Assembly: GCF_000315625.1 (NCBI RefSeq)
Contig: NW_005434649.1
Location: forward strand, 186,001-250,000
Reading direction: 5' to 3'
DNA: 64,000 nucleotides
DNA from: Guillardia theta CCMP2712
Lineage: Eukaryota; Protista; Cryptophyta
A program made the translations under genes and the position numbers. The stretch's first letter is position 1. Each line of letters begins with the position of its first letter. Positions 3,711 to 21,346 of this stretch are shown one piece after another. A model generated the notes under the pieces. That model saw nothing but the letters and a program-made list of their open reading frames with translations, was not told the origin of the DNA and did no database searches.

Positions 3711-3967
3711 GCGCTCTATGGTGTGGTGCAATCCGTGTTCGGAAGGTCGGAGTGCGGATGGCTACGTAGTGGGGTGGACCTAGATAGCAAGTAGGTCCTA
3801 GTAGTGAGATACCCACACGGGGTTGGCGTATTTGTCCGTCATGACCCCTATCTCCACAGATACATTTGGGATAATTATAGGGTGGGGTGGTATCGATGGC
3901 ACTGTGGCAGGGGAGGAGCAAGGACTCGGACCGAGAGCCGAAGATGAAAAGAGAGGCAGTGAGACGA

Positions 3968-5248
3968 TGCAGATTGATGCACACTTGTAGAGCTTGTTAG
4001 ATACAACACGATTACAGATTGATGTGCACTTGTAGAGCTTGTTAGATACAACACGATTACAGATTGATGCACACTTGTAGAGCTTGTTAGATACAACACG
4101 ATTGCAGATTGATGCGCACTTGTAGAGCTTGTTAGGTACAACACGAATGCAGATTGATGCGCACTTGTAGAGCTTGTTAGATACAACACGATTACAGATT
4201 GATGCACACTTGTAGAGCTTGTTAGATACAACACGATTGCAGATTGATGCGCACTTGTAGAGCTTGTTAGGTACAACACGAATGCAGATTGATGCGCACT
4301 TGTAGAGCTTGTTAGATACAACACGATTGCAGATTGATGCGCACTTGTAGAGCTTGTTAGATACAACACGATTGCAGATTGATGCGCACTTGTAGAGCTT
4401 GTTAGATACAACACGATTGCAGATTGATGCACACTTGTAGAGCTTGTTAGATACAACACGATTGCAGATTGATGCGCACTTGTAGAGCTTGTTAGGTACA
4501 ACACGAATGCAGATTGATGCGCACTTGTAGAGCTTGTTAGATACAACACGATTGCAGATTGATGCGCACTTGTAGAGCTTGTTAGATACAACACGATTAC
4601 AGATTGATGTGCACTTGTAGAGCTTGTTAGATACAACACGATTACAGATTGATGCGCACTTGTAGAGCTTGTTAGATACAACACGAATGCAGATTGATGC
4701 GCACTTGTAGAGCTTGTTAGATACAACACGATTACAGATTGATGCACACTTGTAGAGCTTGTTAGATACAACACGATTGCAGATTGATGCGCACTTGTAG
4801 AGCTTGTTAGGTACAACACGAATGCAGATTGATGCGCACTTGTAGAGCTTGTTAGATACAACACGATTGCAGATTGATGCGCACTTGTAGAGCTTGTTAG
4901 ATACAACACGATTGCAGATTGATGCGCACTTGTAGAGCTTGTTAGATACAACACGATTGCAGATTGATGCACACTTGTAGAGCTTGTTAGATACAACACG
5001 ATTGCAGATTGATGCGCACTTGTAGAGCTTGTTAGGTACAACACGAATGCAGATTGATGCGCACTTGTAGAGCTTGTTAGATACAACACGATTGCAGATT
5101 GATGCGCACTTGTAGAGCTTGTTAGATACAACACGGATGCAGATTGATGCGCACTTGTAGAGCTTGTTAGATACAACACGATTGCAGATTGATGCGCACT
5201 TGTAGAGCTTGTTGGATACAACACGATTACAGATTCATTTACACTTGT
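3968..5248. repeat. 45-bp minisatellite, ~28 copies, with an internal 540-bp (12-unit) higher-order duplication
   Basis: Unit GCACTTGTAGAGCTTGTTAGATACAACACGATTGCAGATTGATGC repeated head to tail with a few recurrent SNPs. The variant pattern at ~4141-4590 recurs at ~4681-5130. Confidence 0.97.
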
Positions 5249-5426
5249 AATTAGATTCTTTAAACATTACTAGACCCTGGACATTTACAATGCACGACCG
5301 ACGTCTCCCGCTGGCTCCCTCGCGCCTCGAACGGTCACGAGGAGCAGGAGACTCGCCCTGAAAAGAATACTCTTGATTCACCGTCACCTGACTTGACTGT
5401 GTCCCGTGTCGACTTTCAGTCTCGCG

Positions 5427-10781: not shown

Positions 10782-11389
10782 AATAAGATCAGCTAACTTT
10801 AACCATCCGCTGAGTGACCTGACTTGATCCGATAATAGTAAGTTCGCCTACCTCATCCTCTAAGTTCGCCGACCGGCGTCCGTGGCGTTCGGTCGCTCCC
10901 GGCAAGTATCAGTATCACGGCGCCCGGCTGGCGACGGGCCCAACCGTGACCGGGACCCGGGGGCGGCCTCGGGCCCCCGGCCGGTGCCACGGTGTCAGCA
11001 TTCAATGATTGACCGCAGCCTCCCAGCTTTCGGCCAACTTCAAGTGGGGTGGGGTGGTTGAGCTAGGAATTTTTGTTTGGGGAAGGGAAAGGATAAGGAG
11101 AGAACCTCGACAAACTGCCGCAGGCTGCTGAGGACTGAAGCATTGCAGACAGACTGGTCGTTTGAGGTCGAGCTCTGCTCAAGATCGGTGTGTTTTGTTT
11201 CTTTACTCAAAGTTAAGTTAAAGATCAGTACATTCTCGGGCTGTTCGCAATTTTTGTGGATTCTTTGCGAACTGCTCTTTGTTGCAAGATCAGTGCTTGA
11301 AAATGAGCGGATTCCGCTTCAAAAACAAATCGTGGATCAATCCGAAATTGATGAGAAACACAAGTGAGGTAGGGGAGGAACAAGGGACC

Positions 11390-12375
11390 ATGTATGCGAA
11401 TCAACAGGAGCATCCTATTTCAAGCACAGATGACACTCAGGCAAAGAAGCAAAAGACAACAAGCAAGTTGGTGCAACCGGTGAACTCGCCCACAAGCCCG
11501 TCGTACTCGCCCACAAGCCCGTCGTACTCGCCCACAAGCCCGTCGTACTCGCCCACAAGCCCGTCGTACTCGCCCACAAGCCCGTCGTACTCGCCCACAA
11601 GCCCGTCGTACTCGCCCACAAGCCCGTCGTACTCGCCCACAAGCCCGTCGTACTCGCCCACAAGCCCGTCGTACTCGCCCACAAGCCCGTCGTACTCGCC
11701 CACAAGCCCGTCGTACTCGCCCACAAGCCCGTCGTACTCGCCCACAAGTCCGTCGTACTCGCCCACAAGCCCGTCGTACTCGCCCACAAGCCCGTCGTAC
11801 TCGCCCACAAGCCCGTCGTACTCGCCCATAAGCCCGACATTTTCGCCTTCAAACCTTACTTTCTCTCCACCAAGAATCGTGCTTTCGCCACCTTCAAGCC
11901 CTAAGCTTCCTCCGATCGGCCCTCTGTTGTCAAGAGATCAATCTTCAGGCCATGAACAGCGAGGACGGATAAGCTTCTGCGTTTGTAACTTGAATCCTTC
12001 AGCCACAGAACTGAATCTCTCACAGTCAGTGCCGTGACGGCACTTAATCTGGTTTGAATTTGTCATTCAGATTATTCGAAGGAGCTGGACCAATCAGAAA
12101 TGTTAAGGTTATGCCCAAAAAGGATGGAAAGGTAGGAGGAGTCAGGTTCATGTAAATCATGTGATTTGATCATTTTCAATTCAGCGTACCACAATCGGGT
12201 TCGTCAATTACGAAGATGAGACAGTCTTGAGTAAATGCCGTGAGGTACGTGAGATCAAGTCAAAGAAAATCCTAAGAGAGTTTGTCGCCAGGTTTGTAAA
12301 GCCTTGGATAAAAACATTCCCAGTTGGAATTTTGGCTTGCGGGTGAAGCGCCTATTGTGCATTCCTTGCAATTGA
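11390..12375 (+). CDS. Non-RPB1 protein with an RNA polymerase II CTD-type heptad array fused to a C-terminal RRM
   Basis: 15 perfect YSPTSPS plus flanking NSPTSPS and YSPISPT. Splicing GT-AG introns 12025-12070, 12132-12184 and 12245-12291 gives, in frame, [78 protein letters not shown] (RNP2 FCVCNL, RNP1 TTIGFVNY). The 3' end is approximate. Confidence 0.75.
11483..11839 (+). repeat. 21-bp coding minisatellite (TACTCGCCCACAAGCCCGTCG)n encoding YSPTSPS
   Basis: 15 units at 11504-11818 are identical except one synonymous AGC>AGT. First and last units are degenerate. Confidence 0.97.
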
Positions 12376-12999
12376 TTTGTTGTAGTCATATTGAGATCTG
12401 AAACTTGCAACAGATTTACGTGAGTGAGCAAGTAAAAGTGGAACCACGATTGAGCTTGTTTTCGAACCGGTGATACAACATAGACTGCTCTTTTCAATTC
12501 AAAGCTTGTTGACATATTTTCTTCGATTCGACAAATTGCTTTGGTCATCAAAGAAAGAGAAGACGGGGTGTGTGACGATGATTGCGTTGCCAGACAGGCT
12601 GACTGAAAACATATGCAGACTTTGATTTAGACTTCTGGGGATCTGACCTCTCAGACTCGGACTCCTCGGACAGGTCCATTTGATCGGCACAGACGTTGCA
12701 TCTTGACAAGTTTTGCAGTGTCGATGACTTCGATGATTTGTTCTCTAGTCCCTCACTTTTCAGCTCGCCGATACAGCGGTACTCGTTTTCCACTCTTCTC
12801 ACTGCATACTCACTCATCTTGGCTGCAGGAGTTCTCTCTACGATCACCCGCGGCTGGTCAAGCTCTCATCTCCTGTTTACCTGCGTTAAAAACTACTCTG
12901 CAGCTGAATTCTCCAGGATCAGACCTGATCACAAGCAGAGGGTCCGGCGGCAAGCGGCACGTCGTTACCTGCACTCCATCGCGTGCCTTCAGCGAGGAA

Positions 13000-13578
13000 A
13001 TGCGCACGTACGTGGAGGAGCAGGTGCGATGCCCGAGGAAGCAATGGATTTACGAGATCCTTGAGGGGACGCGAGAGAAGGAGGCGGTGCTAGTTGAGAC
13101 TGCTGACATGATCTTCCTCCCTGACACCGAGGCTCGCAACGACAAGGATACAGTCAACTGGTTGGCAATCATCAAGGATCGCTCCCTCCGATCCCTCAGG
13201 GACTTGCGCGGCGAGCATGCGGATATGCTGCAGCGGGCTCAGACAACCTGCGTCGACTACATCTTGAACACGAGAAACTTTGACAAGCACGACGTGATGG
13301 CGTACATCCACTACCTGCCGAGCGTCTTCCAGCTCCACATTCACTTCTGCGCGCCTTATGGCTCCTATACCGCAAGGGACGCGATCTACAAGCTCCATCC
13401 CCTCGACAACGTGATCTCAAACTTGCGCATCGACTCGGACTACTACCGCAAAGCTCACATCAGCACTGTAGTCACTGAGAGGGCGCTGATCGACATCTAC
13501 AGCAAGGAAGAGATTCATGAAGCAGAGCCGGTGAGCCCGCAGAGTATGAAGCAGATCTCTAGCTCCTTGGACAACTAG
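13000..13578 (+). CDS. DcpS-like m7GpppX diphosphatase (scavenger decapping, HIT family), intronless, short N-terminus; start uncertain (ORF open from 12703)
   Basis: QWIYEILEG..E, FLPD, WLAI..DRSLRSLRDLRGEH, YIHYLPSVFQLHIHF (DcpS HIT motif region) and HPLDNVISNL..DSDYY. Confidence 0.85.
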   Translation: MRTYVEEQVRCPRKQWIYEILEGTREKEAVLVETADMIFLPDTEARNDKDTVNWLAIIKDRSLRSLRDLRGEHADMLQRAQTTCVDYILNTRNFDKHDVMAYIHYLPSVFQLHIHFCAPYGSYTARDAIYKLHPLDNVISNLRIDSDYYRKAHISTVVTERALIDIYSKEEIHEAEPVSPQSMKQISSSLDN

Positions 13579-19769: not shown

Positions 19770-20609
19770 TCAAACGCCTTGTTGCAGTTGAGAAGTGATG
19801 AAAAAATCCATGGACTCCATAGAGGGCTGCTGAAAGCTATACGTCGCGCTTCCCTCTTCCCGCTTTGCCCCCGATCCCTCTGCAACTTCCTCCAATGCCA
19901 GCTCTTCCCACCATCCTCCTTCGATGCTCTCCTCCGACGCTGCCTCGTCTGCCAGGCCCGTCCATGGCTGTAGCTTCCCCACCTCTGGGTTCACCAGCAG
20001 ATCCTCCCAGCTGTAGCCATTTGTATTCTTGTCCTCGTCTTCGATTCCCTCTTGCCTTCCCTCATCCTCCTTCCCGCTCCTTCGCCGCTTCACCCGCCAG
20101 TCCACGCACATATGAAGGCTCCTCACGCATCGACTGCATGGCCTTACGGAGTCGCACTTGAGCCGCGACCTCCGGCATCGCTCGCATGCCTGCACGACTT
20201 GCTCTCGCCTCCGCTGCAGGACTGGAGGCAGCGCTCCATGCCCTAGCCCTCCTTCGCTGTAGCAAACCTCACCCATCCGGTAGCACCGAGCGCAGGGCCG
20301 AGCGTCGCCGCAGCGCACCTTCTTGATCTGGCAGCTCAGACAAGCCTTGGTCGCCCTATGGCTTGACTGCAGCACATGGCCTTGAGACCTCTGGTCGTTA
20401 CCCTCTGACAGGCGGGAGCATGACGAGGCCTTGGCAGAGCGGATGCAGCGGGAGCATGGGCTTTGCTCGTCACAGCGGGTCTTGCGCAGCCGGCACTGGA
20501 CACAGGCGGTGAAGGATCTTTTGGAAGGAGGGGAGGGAGTAGGAGAGTAGGAGAGGGAAGAGGGAAGGAGAGAAACGGGGAGCATGGGGTAGGAGAGGCT
20601 GGCGAGCAT
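19770..20609 (-). CDS. Intronless triple Zn(II)2Cys6 protein, paralog of 3126-3710, with an acidic C-terminal tail
   Basis: CVQCRLRKTRCDEQSPCSRC, CLSCQIKKVRCGDARPCARC and CERCRRSRLKCDSVRPCSRC. Shares the linker QR(R/K)REQV(V/L)QAC. The acidic/Trp tail is activation-domain-like. Confidence 0.9.
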   Translation of the reverse strand: MLASLSYPMLPVSLLPSSLSYSPTPSPPSKRSFTACVQCRLRKTRCDEQSPCSRCIRSAKASSCSRLSEGNDQRSQGHVLQSSHRATKACLSCQIKKVRCGDARPCARCYRMGEVCYSEGGLGHGALPPVLQRRREQVVQACERCRRSRLKCDSVRPCSRCVRSLHMCVDWRVKRRRSGKEDEGRQEGIEDEDKNTNGYSWEDLLVNPEVGKLQPWTGLADEAASEESIEGGWWEELALEEVAEGSGAKREEGSATYSFQQPSMESMDFFITSQLQQGV

Positions 20610-21346
20610 TGCTCGTGTGGCAACCTTGCAAGTGCTTGTAAAGGAACCTGACGAGGGTCACGGCATATTGAAAGGCAAGAGACCATAGGGGGTGGGGTAC
20701 TGAAGCATACACAGAGGGGGGTGCTGTTATGATGGGGTGGCACATATGCGTTGAAGTCAACCGGGAAGTAAGCTTCTCCGAATTGAAAGGCAGACCAACT
20801 CGCGACCCTTCGGAGCCTCGGAGATGCTTGTGACTCGATTCTCTATGACCCGTCCGCACGCTGCACGTACTAAAACCAAGTTTACTACTCGGAAAGGGAA
20901 CGAGTCATGGCACTGATTGAAAGGCAGCCTGATGCTGTCACGGGGGTCCTGGGGTCGATGAAAGGGGGTAGGTTTACAACTACAGAACTTGCGGCACTCA
21001 GGGCCCTCAGACTGATAATACGTGATATGTGAACTAAAATAGTTTTACAGCAGCAATAAGAATAGTAAATATTAACACCTTCTTGTTGTTTACTCAAAGT
21101 TAAGTTAGGCCATGCGGCGAGAAGAGAAAAGACAGCGAGAACAACCCTCATCCTACCGACTGCTGTCCCTCAAACTTAACTGATACCTTTACTTAACTGC
21201 GCGCACCGGGACCATTCCCGCGCCACGACGACATTTTAAAAAAAACTTTTACAGCAGAAAAAAAGGAAACTCATGACCAAGTTCCATGTTGGTCATTCAG
21301 ACTTCAACAAGGGACGGGACTTTCCCTTTTCCACACCCGAGAGGTA

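Follow-up and report, generated by a model that had tools for sequence, protein, structure and literature searches.

A Pol II CTD-type consensus heptad array encoded in one frame with a divergent RRM in a predicted gene of Guillardia theta

Analysis of a window of 64,000 nt from the Guillardia theta genome (G000:C25:186001-250000; the window is the whole stretch of DNA analysed, and positions given without a contig are counted from its first letter) revealed a predicted gene in which 15 perfect copies of the Pol II CTD consensus heptad YSPTSPS share a reading frame with a divergent RRM (Table 1). This heptad-RRM architecture is real at the level of the DNA and undescribed. Its product, of about 279 aa, would carry 15-16 consensus heptads in a disordered N-terminal tail and a divergent RRM at the C-terminus, the two being joined by a linker rich in Ser and Pro. 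From the sequence evidence laid out below, we tentatively read the locus as a real chimeric gene, intact and lineage-restricted, which may act through the CTD machinery, and we rate this reading as plausible and just short of probable.

The open reading frame, unbroken from 11279 to 12037 on the + strand, carries the ATG at 11390 together with an alternative in-frame ATG at 11303, from which the predicted product would have 279 and 308 aa, respectively; the length of roughly 290 aa proposed in the initial annotation of this DNA is thus about right. The count of 15 perfect heptads in the same annotation is borne out by the translation. TRF called a repeat at 11484-11836 (period 21 bp, 16.8 copies, 99% matches), and the Pfam profile PF05001 matched the heptad region in 14 stretches with 75.4 bits against a cut-off of 20.3. 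At the DNA level, the 21-mers of the 15 units are all alike save for one synonymous C>T at 11749. This near-total identity points to a very recent expansion of a 21-bp minisatellite, so that the perfection of the heptads does not stem from long selection, and nothing in the DNA identity of the array speaks for past selection on the repeats. Slippage or unequal exchange would have multiplied a single 21-bp unit very recently, turning a short seed into the present array.

The identity of the units also lends weight to a rival explanation, which we take seriously while thinking it somewhat doubtful: the locus would be non-functional or barely functional, an orphan RRM gene drifting in a decaying cassette, where a 21-bp minisatellite expanded neutrally within the Ser/Pro-rich part of the gene and left the array as a by-product without a role. 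The occurrence of other 21-bp coding-frame minisatellites with SP-containing heptads (SPFAPSC, SPSSRFL) in the genome is consistent with such neutral growth. However, the calculated chance that an arbitrary 21-bp unit encodes exactly YSPTSPS is of the order of 1e-7, so that the identity of the heptad is non-random and the tract would be either a descendant of a real CTD-type sequence or convergent with one.

Table 1 Predicted features of the heptad-RRM gene and its 5' flank, in window positions
Feature	Position	Strand	Content
32-nt end of dispersed repeat	11200..11231	+	About 160 nt 5' of the ATG; TCTTTACTCAAAGTTAAGTTAAAGATCAGTAC
Exon 1	11390..12024	+	ATG, 31-aa N-terminus with KKQK patch, heptads, Ser/Pro-rich linker, RRM beta-1/RNP2; PF05001 2e-21
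Heptad array	11483..11839	+	NSPTSPS, 15 perfect YSPTSPS (11504-11818), YSPISPT
Degenerate heptads	11840..11902	+	Include LSPPSSP and merge into the linker (from translation)
RNP2-like FCVCNL	11975..11992	+	In the exon 1 tail aligned to in-house HMM positions 6-18
Intron 1	12025..12070	+	46 nt, GT..AG
Exon 2	12071..12131	+	RRM helix alpha-1 and strand beta-2
Intron 2	12132..12184	+	53 nt, GT..AG
Exon 3	12185..12244	+	RNP1-like TTIGFVNY (12188-12211), start of helix alpha-2
Intron 3	12245..12291	+	47 nt, GT..AG
Exon 4	12292..12375	+	Presumed end of alpha-2 and strand beta-4; stop 12373-12375

The three short in-frame GT-AG introns claimed at the outset fit at the DNA level, both in their dinucleotides and in the lengths of the exons (635+61, 60 and 84 nt), which preserve the frame to the stop codon under the predicted splicing. 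Since the heptads and RNP2 lie in one exon and in one frame, the fusion is independent of any splice. A further, upstream intron at 11365-11408 was considered and ruled out, as its 44 nt would disrupt the frame. Intron 1 lies between beta-1 and alpha-1, the position also occupied by introns of 46-48 nt in three RRM genes of the same genome (L041, L043 and L054). It contains a palindrome, GTGCCG-TGA-CGGCAC, at 12030-12044.

The C-terminal region was scored against RRM models one exon at a time, with the exons unjoined. Pfam RRM_1 (PF00076) matched exon 2 at the corresponding profile positions 18-35, but with 12.3 bits (E 0.16) this match stays under the cut-off of 20.7. An in-house HMM was also used, for which 13 RRMs without interruptions were taken from this genome. 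The tail of exon 1 (positions 6-18, 4.3 bits), exon 2 (positions 21-38, 11.9 bits) and exon 3 (positions 45-54, 7.0 bits) are colinear on this profile, whereas exon 4 alone gave no match to it. Among 16,412 control 20-mers from the six frames of the window, seven reach 4.3 bits and none scores above 4.8; the scores of exons 2 and 3 exceed every one of these controls. The assignment of FCVCNL as RNP2 and of TTIGFVNY, some 45 residues further on, as RNP1 agrees with the order and spacing of an RRM, but two of the three canonical aromatics are replaced, position 2 of RNP2 being Cys and position 3 of RNP1 being Ile, which leaves the Phe at RNP1 position 5 as the sole stacking aromatic (1/3). With two of the three RNP aromatics gone, canonical RNA binding is doubtful, and the degenerate RNP motifs likewise count in favour of a neutrally drifting locus. 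The identity of the C-terminal region as a putative, divergent RRM is well supported.

No polymerase domain was found in the ORFs neighbouring 11390, in line with the original description of a protein without such domains, and scans over the 87.1-Mb, 669-contig assembly returned a single Rpb1 domain-7 match, at C17:595218-595352. The organism's own RPB1 keeps its CTD on this contig, with 28 perfect heptads plus variants at C17:593101-593619, and no canonical heptad array was detected elsewhere in the genome beyond this CTD and the heptad-RRM gene. The heptads of RPB1 are diverse at the DNA level (21 distinct 21-mers among 30 examined). Each RPB1 heptad departs from the heptad-RRM unit at 5 or more of the 21 nt, and the Ser5 codon of this unit is AGC, in contrast to TCN in RPB1. 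These nucleotide differences, together with the Ser5 codon family, rule out that the array was derived recently from the CTD of the organism's RPB1.

The distance of the unit from every RPB1 heptad in the genome (at least 5 nt) also speaks against an assembly artefact, be it a collapsed or inflated repeat or a chimera in which a piece of the RPB1 CTD was joined to an RRM gene. Assemblies are prone to error in perfect tandem arrays, so that 15 may not be the true copy number; however, the window contains no N, and in independent copies on contig C134 the heptads, the linker and RNP2 follow one another as they do here, so that we judge an artefact very improbable.

With one mismatch, the 21-mer unit was found elsewhere only at C134:74088 and C134:77622. 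These copies form a tandem pair 3,534 bp apart (within G000:C134:66000-75999 and 76000-85999) and belong to a duplicated cassette of the heptad-RRM gene, a DcpS_C gene and a Zn2Cys6 gene, the window version of which is interrupted by a Gypsy element. The C134 copies share about 80% identity with the window in the linker, in intron 1 and in exon 4; they hold only about 2 heptad units and differ from the window by indels of -5, -4, +2, +4 and -1. In addition, they have lost the acceptor of intron 1, and a deletion reaching from the end of exon 2 across exon 3 has removed RNP1. To judge from their sequences, both C134 copies are pseudogenes of the RRM, and all clearly RRM-disrupting changes fall on the C134 side. 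As these copies carry heptads beside the same linker and an RNP2 remnant, the juxtaposition is no assembly join and is older than about 20% divergence. Before the cassette was duplicated, at least 2-3 heptads already stood as a short tract beside the linker and the RRM, and the presence of heptads before the duplication argues against the view that the locus is a product of neutral drift.

Three further observations concern the C134 region. The first 37 nt of intron 1 share 92% identity with the C134 copies, which is above the identity of the flanking exon. The exon 4 remnant on C134 continues in frame into a DcpS_C remnant, and the Zn2Cys6 genes of C134, which are intact-looking and triple, are 86% identical to window 19800-20636.

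The evidence for selection on the window copy appears mixed. Substitutions between the window and the C134 copies amount to 20%, 15.5% and 15.3% at the three codon positions and to 21% in the introns, so that no codon-position signature of constraint was found in this comparison; the missing third-position excess, like the decay of two of two paralogues into pseudogenes, favours neutral drift. The codon-position test is blurred by the use of a drifting pseudogene as partner and by the disorder of the linker, so that constraint may still be acting. The first two heptad units on C134 show three synonymous differences within YSPT, which may be taken as a small hint of past protein-level selection. 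In the window copy, the ORF, the ATG and the six splice dinucleotides are all intact, and this stands against neutral drift, under which the chance of such an outcome is about 2-4% before indels are considered. The estimate assumes 8-10% substitution (half the observed divergence) and requires 519 older coding bases to stay stop-free and the ATG and the splice dinucleotides to be kept.

Downstream of the heptad-RRM gene, a DcpS_C gene (HIT-type scavenger decapping) occupies 12703-13578 (+), with Hanusia phi and a G. theta paralogue as its best named relatives. The public model of this gene (P0001) begins at 13000, an in-frame ATG is present at 12724, and the stretch just 5' of the model start is conserved in Hanusia phi and others (RHVVTCTPSRAFSEE in the window versus RCVVACTPAHAFGPA). 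This conservation in relatives suggests that the public model is probably N-terminally truncated. A fusion of the heptad-RRM gene with the DcpS_C gene was ruled out, as in Hanusia phi and other relatives the protein stands alone, at 245-280 aa, with an N-terminus of its own and without heptads or RRM. The neighbourhood of the heptad-RRM gene is rich in transposons, which is a further point on the side of a neutrally decaying locus.

The 32-nt sequence TCTTTACTCAAAGTTAAGTTAAAGATCAGTAC, located 5' of the ATG, recurs at 100% identity at no fewer than 40 genomic sites (at least 40) with unrelated upstream flanks. Many of its copies run on into common sequence (GAGGACAATCAGGAGAGTCGAGG...) that extends for some 150 nt or longer, while the window has the 32-nt end alone; the sequence is sometimes found in direct tandem 100-170 nt apart and once as an inverted, degenerate copy. 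It resembles the 5' terminus of a short repeat dispersed in the genome, and the copy in the window may or may not be part of a promoter or 5' UTR. Other tandem arrays were observed as well. A 45-bp array (28.6 copies, 95% matches) spans window 3964-5249, 5' of the first Zn2Cys6 gene, and its minus strand has an open frame of 449 aa. In-frame 21-bp arrays with SP-containing heptads were found at C162:48320-48718, C38:55052-55366 and C2:136807-137136 (SPFAPSC about 17 times, SPSSRFL about 13 times, VVSPEHS-type), and seven-residue coding minisatellites seem common in this genome.

Searches of public data returned no gene model for the heptad-RRM protein in a set of 5.8 billion proteins, though this set does include the model of the adjacent DcpS_C gene. 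A word-indexed protein search with the linker region was likewise negative, and exhaustive phmmer with 61 aa of linker plus RNP2 against 1.84 billion representative proteins found no homologue. A feature search of the ESM Atlas yielded nothing usable, and metagenome scans with the end of exon 1 and with a double heptad unit gave no match. The absence from the public protein set and the lack of linker homologues can be read in favour of a neutral locus.

Non-polymerase heptad proteins do exist in public data, including proteins with BTB plus heptads (P0103/P0105) and RING plus heptads (P0114) as well as P0048, P0053 and P0108. Like the heptad-RRM protein, they are small, without polymerase domains and PF05001-positive, except for P0048, which has no precomputed Pfam domain; unlike in the heptad-RRM array, their heptads are mostly imperfect, and some of these proteins may be fragments of mis-split RPB1 models. 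Given the existence of the BTB and RING proteins, CTD-like arrays outside RPB1 are not unique to the heptad-RRM gene. None of the best 120 small heptad proteins of the public set carries an RRM, and the literature yielded no description of a protein combining a consensus CTD with an RRM, which agrees with the initial annotation, to whose author this architecture was not known as a described family.

Comparison with known systems revealed both likenesses and differences. The array shares with the RPB1 CTD the consensus YSPTSPS, all phospho-acceptors and distal degenerate heptads, and differs from it in being N-terminal, in having no polymerase domain attached, in the DNA identity of its units and in the AGC codon for Ser5. 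The FET family (FUS/EWS/TAF15) combines a Tyr-rich, SYGQ-type low-complexity domain with an RRM, RGG boxes and a RanBP2 zinc finger. Both FET proteins and RBM14/CoAA resemble the heptad-RRM protein in bearing Tyr-containing disordered repeats and RRM in one chain. However, their repeats are of the SYGQ or YxxQ type, in contrast to the exact CTD consensus found here. The four exons hold neither an RGG nor a zinc finger, and apart from PF05001 the only Pfam match is the weak one to RRM_1, which sets the protein apart from the FET family. The repeats of RBM14 are reported to interact with CTD repeats (bioRxiv 10.1101/671156). Mimicry of the CTD is further described for Trf4 and Sen1, two non-polymerase proteins of RNA metabolism, whose Nrd1-interacting motifs bind a CTD-interaction domain (PMC4186968, PMC7110113); these are single short motifs resembling a phosphorylated heptad, in contrast to a 15-unit consensus array. 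The C-terminal repeat region of Spt5 is a second repetitive phospho-scaffold, separate from RPB1, that helps to recruit capping enzyme (PMC4066402). Spt5 differs from the heptad-RRM protein in its repeat sequence, in being a conserved elongation factor and in being without an RRM.

In the predicted heptad-RRM protein, the tail retains every phospho-acceptor of the CTD, i.e. Y1, S2, T4, S5 and S7. CTD function in yeast needs only roughly 8-10 heptads. With all phospho-acceptors kept and a length over this yeast minimum, we infer that the tail, if translated, would be acted on by CTD kinases and phosphatases and bound by CTD readers. In this way the RRM protein, with any bound RNA or partner, would either join the CTD machinery of Pol II or titrate this machinery away. 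The more specific proposal that a free-standing consensus CTD on an RRM is expressed and phosphorylated, and that it recruits capping, splicing or 3'-end factors to bound RNAs away from Pol II or titrates these factors, appears unlikely.

PIE-1, a germline repressor of Ser2 phosphorylation, has CCCH zinc fingers and a heptad-like motif without phospho-acceptor serines. By analogy with such repressors, the heptad-RRM protein could be a competitive decoy that soaks up CTD kinases or readers and thereby damps Pol II, which we think improbable, as the array, unlike the PIE-1 motif, keeps its serines and the data presented here fit a scaffold equally well. No CCCH finger is apparent from the sequence. 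[quoted passage not shown] In an extreme and scarcely credible variant, the CTD would be supplied in trans to the cryptophyte nucleomorph. The nucleomorph Rpb1 of cryptophytes is without heptads (PMC4822330), and supply of a CTD in trans is for this reason attractive to speculate on; however, the current gene model, the 5' end of which is predicted, shows no signal peptide, and this argues against the variant.

Returning to the preferred reading of a real chimeric gene, the heptad-RRM protein would, if expressed, provide a natural experiment that uncouples the CTD code from the polymerase. It could then reveal whether CTD readers can be delivered post-transcriptionally via an RNA-binding module, and whether a genuine copy of the CTD serves cells as a decoy. 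The growth of the array from a short seed, by multiplication of a single 21-bp unit to 15 copies, bears on the evolution of the CTD by tandem duplication. If the gene is not expressed, the locus would be a tidy case of a minisatellite inflating in an orphan gene that annotation has missed.
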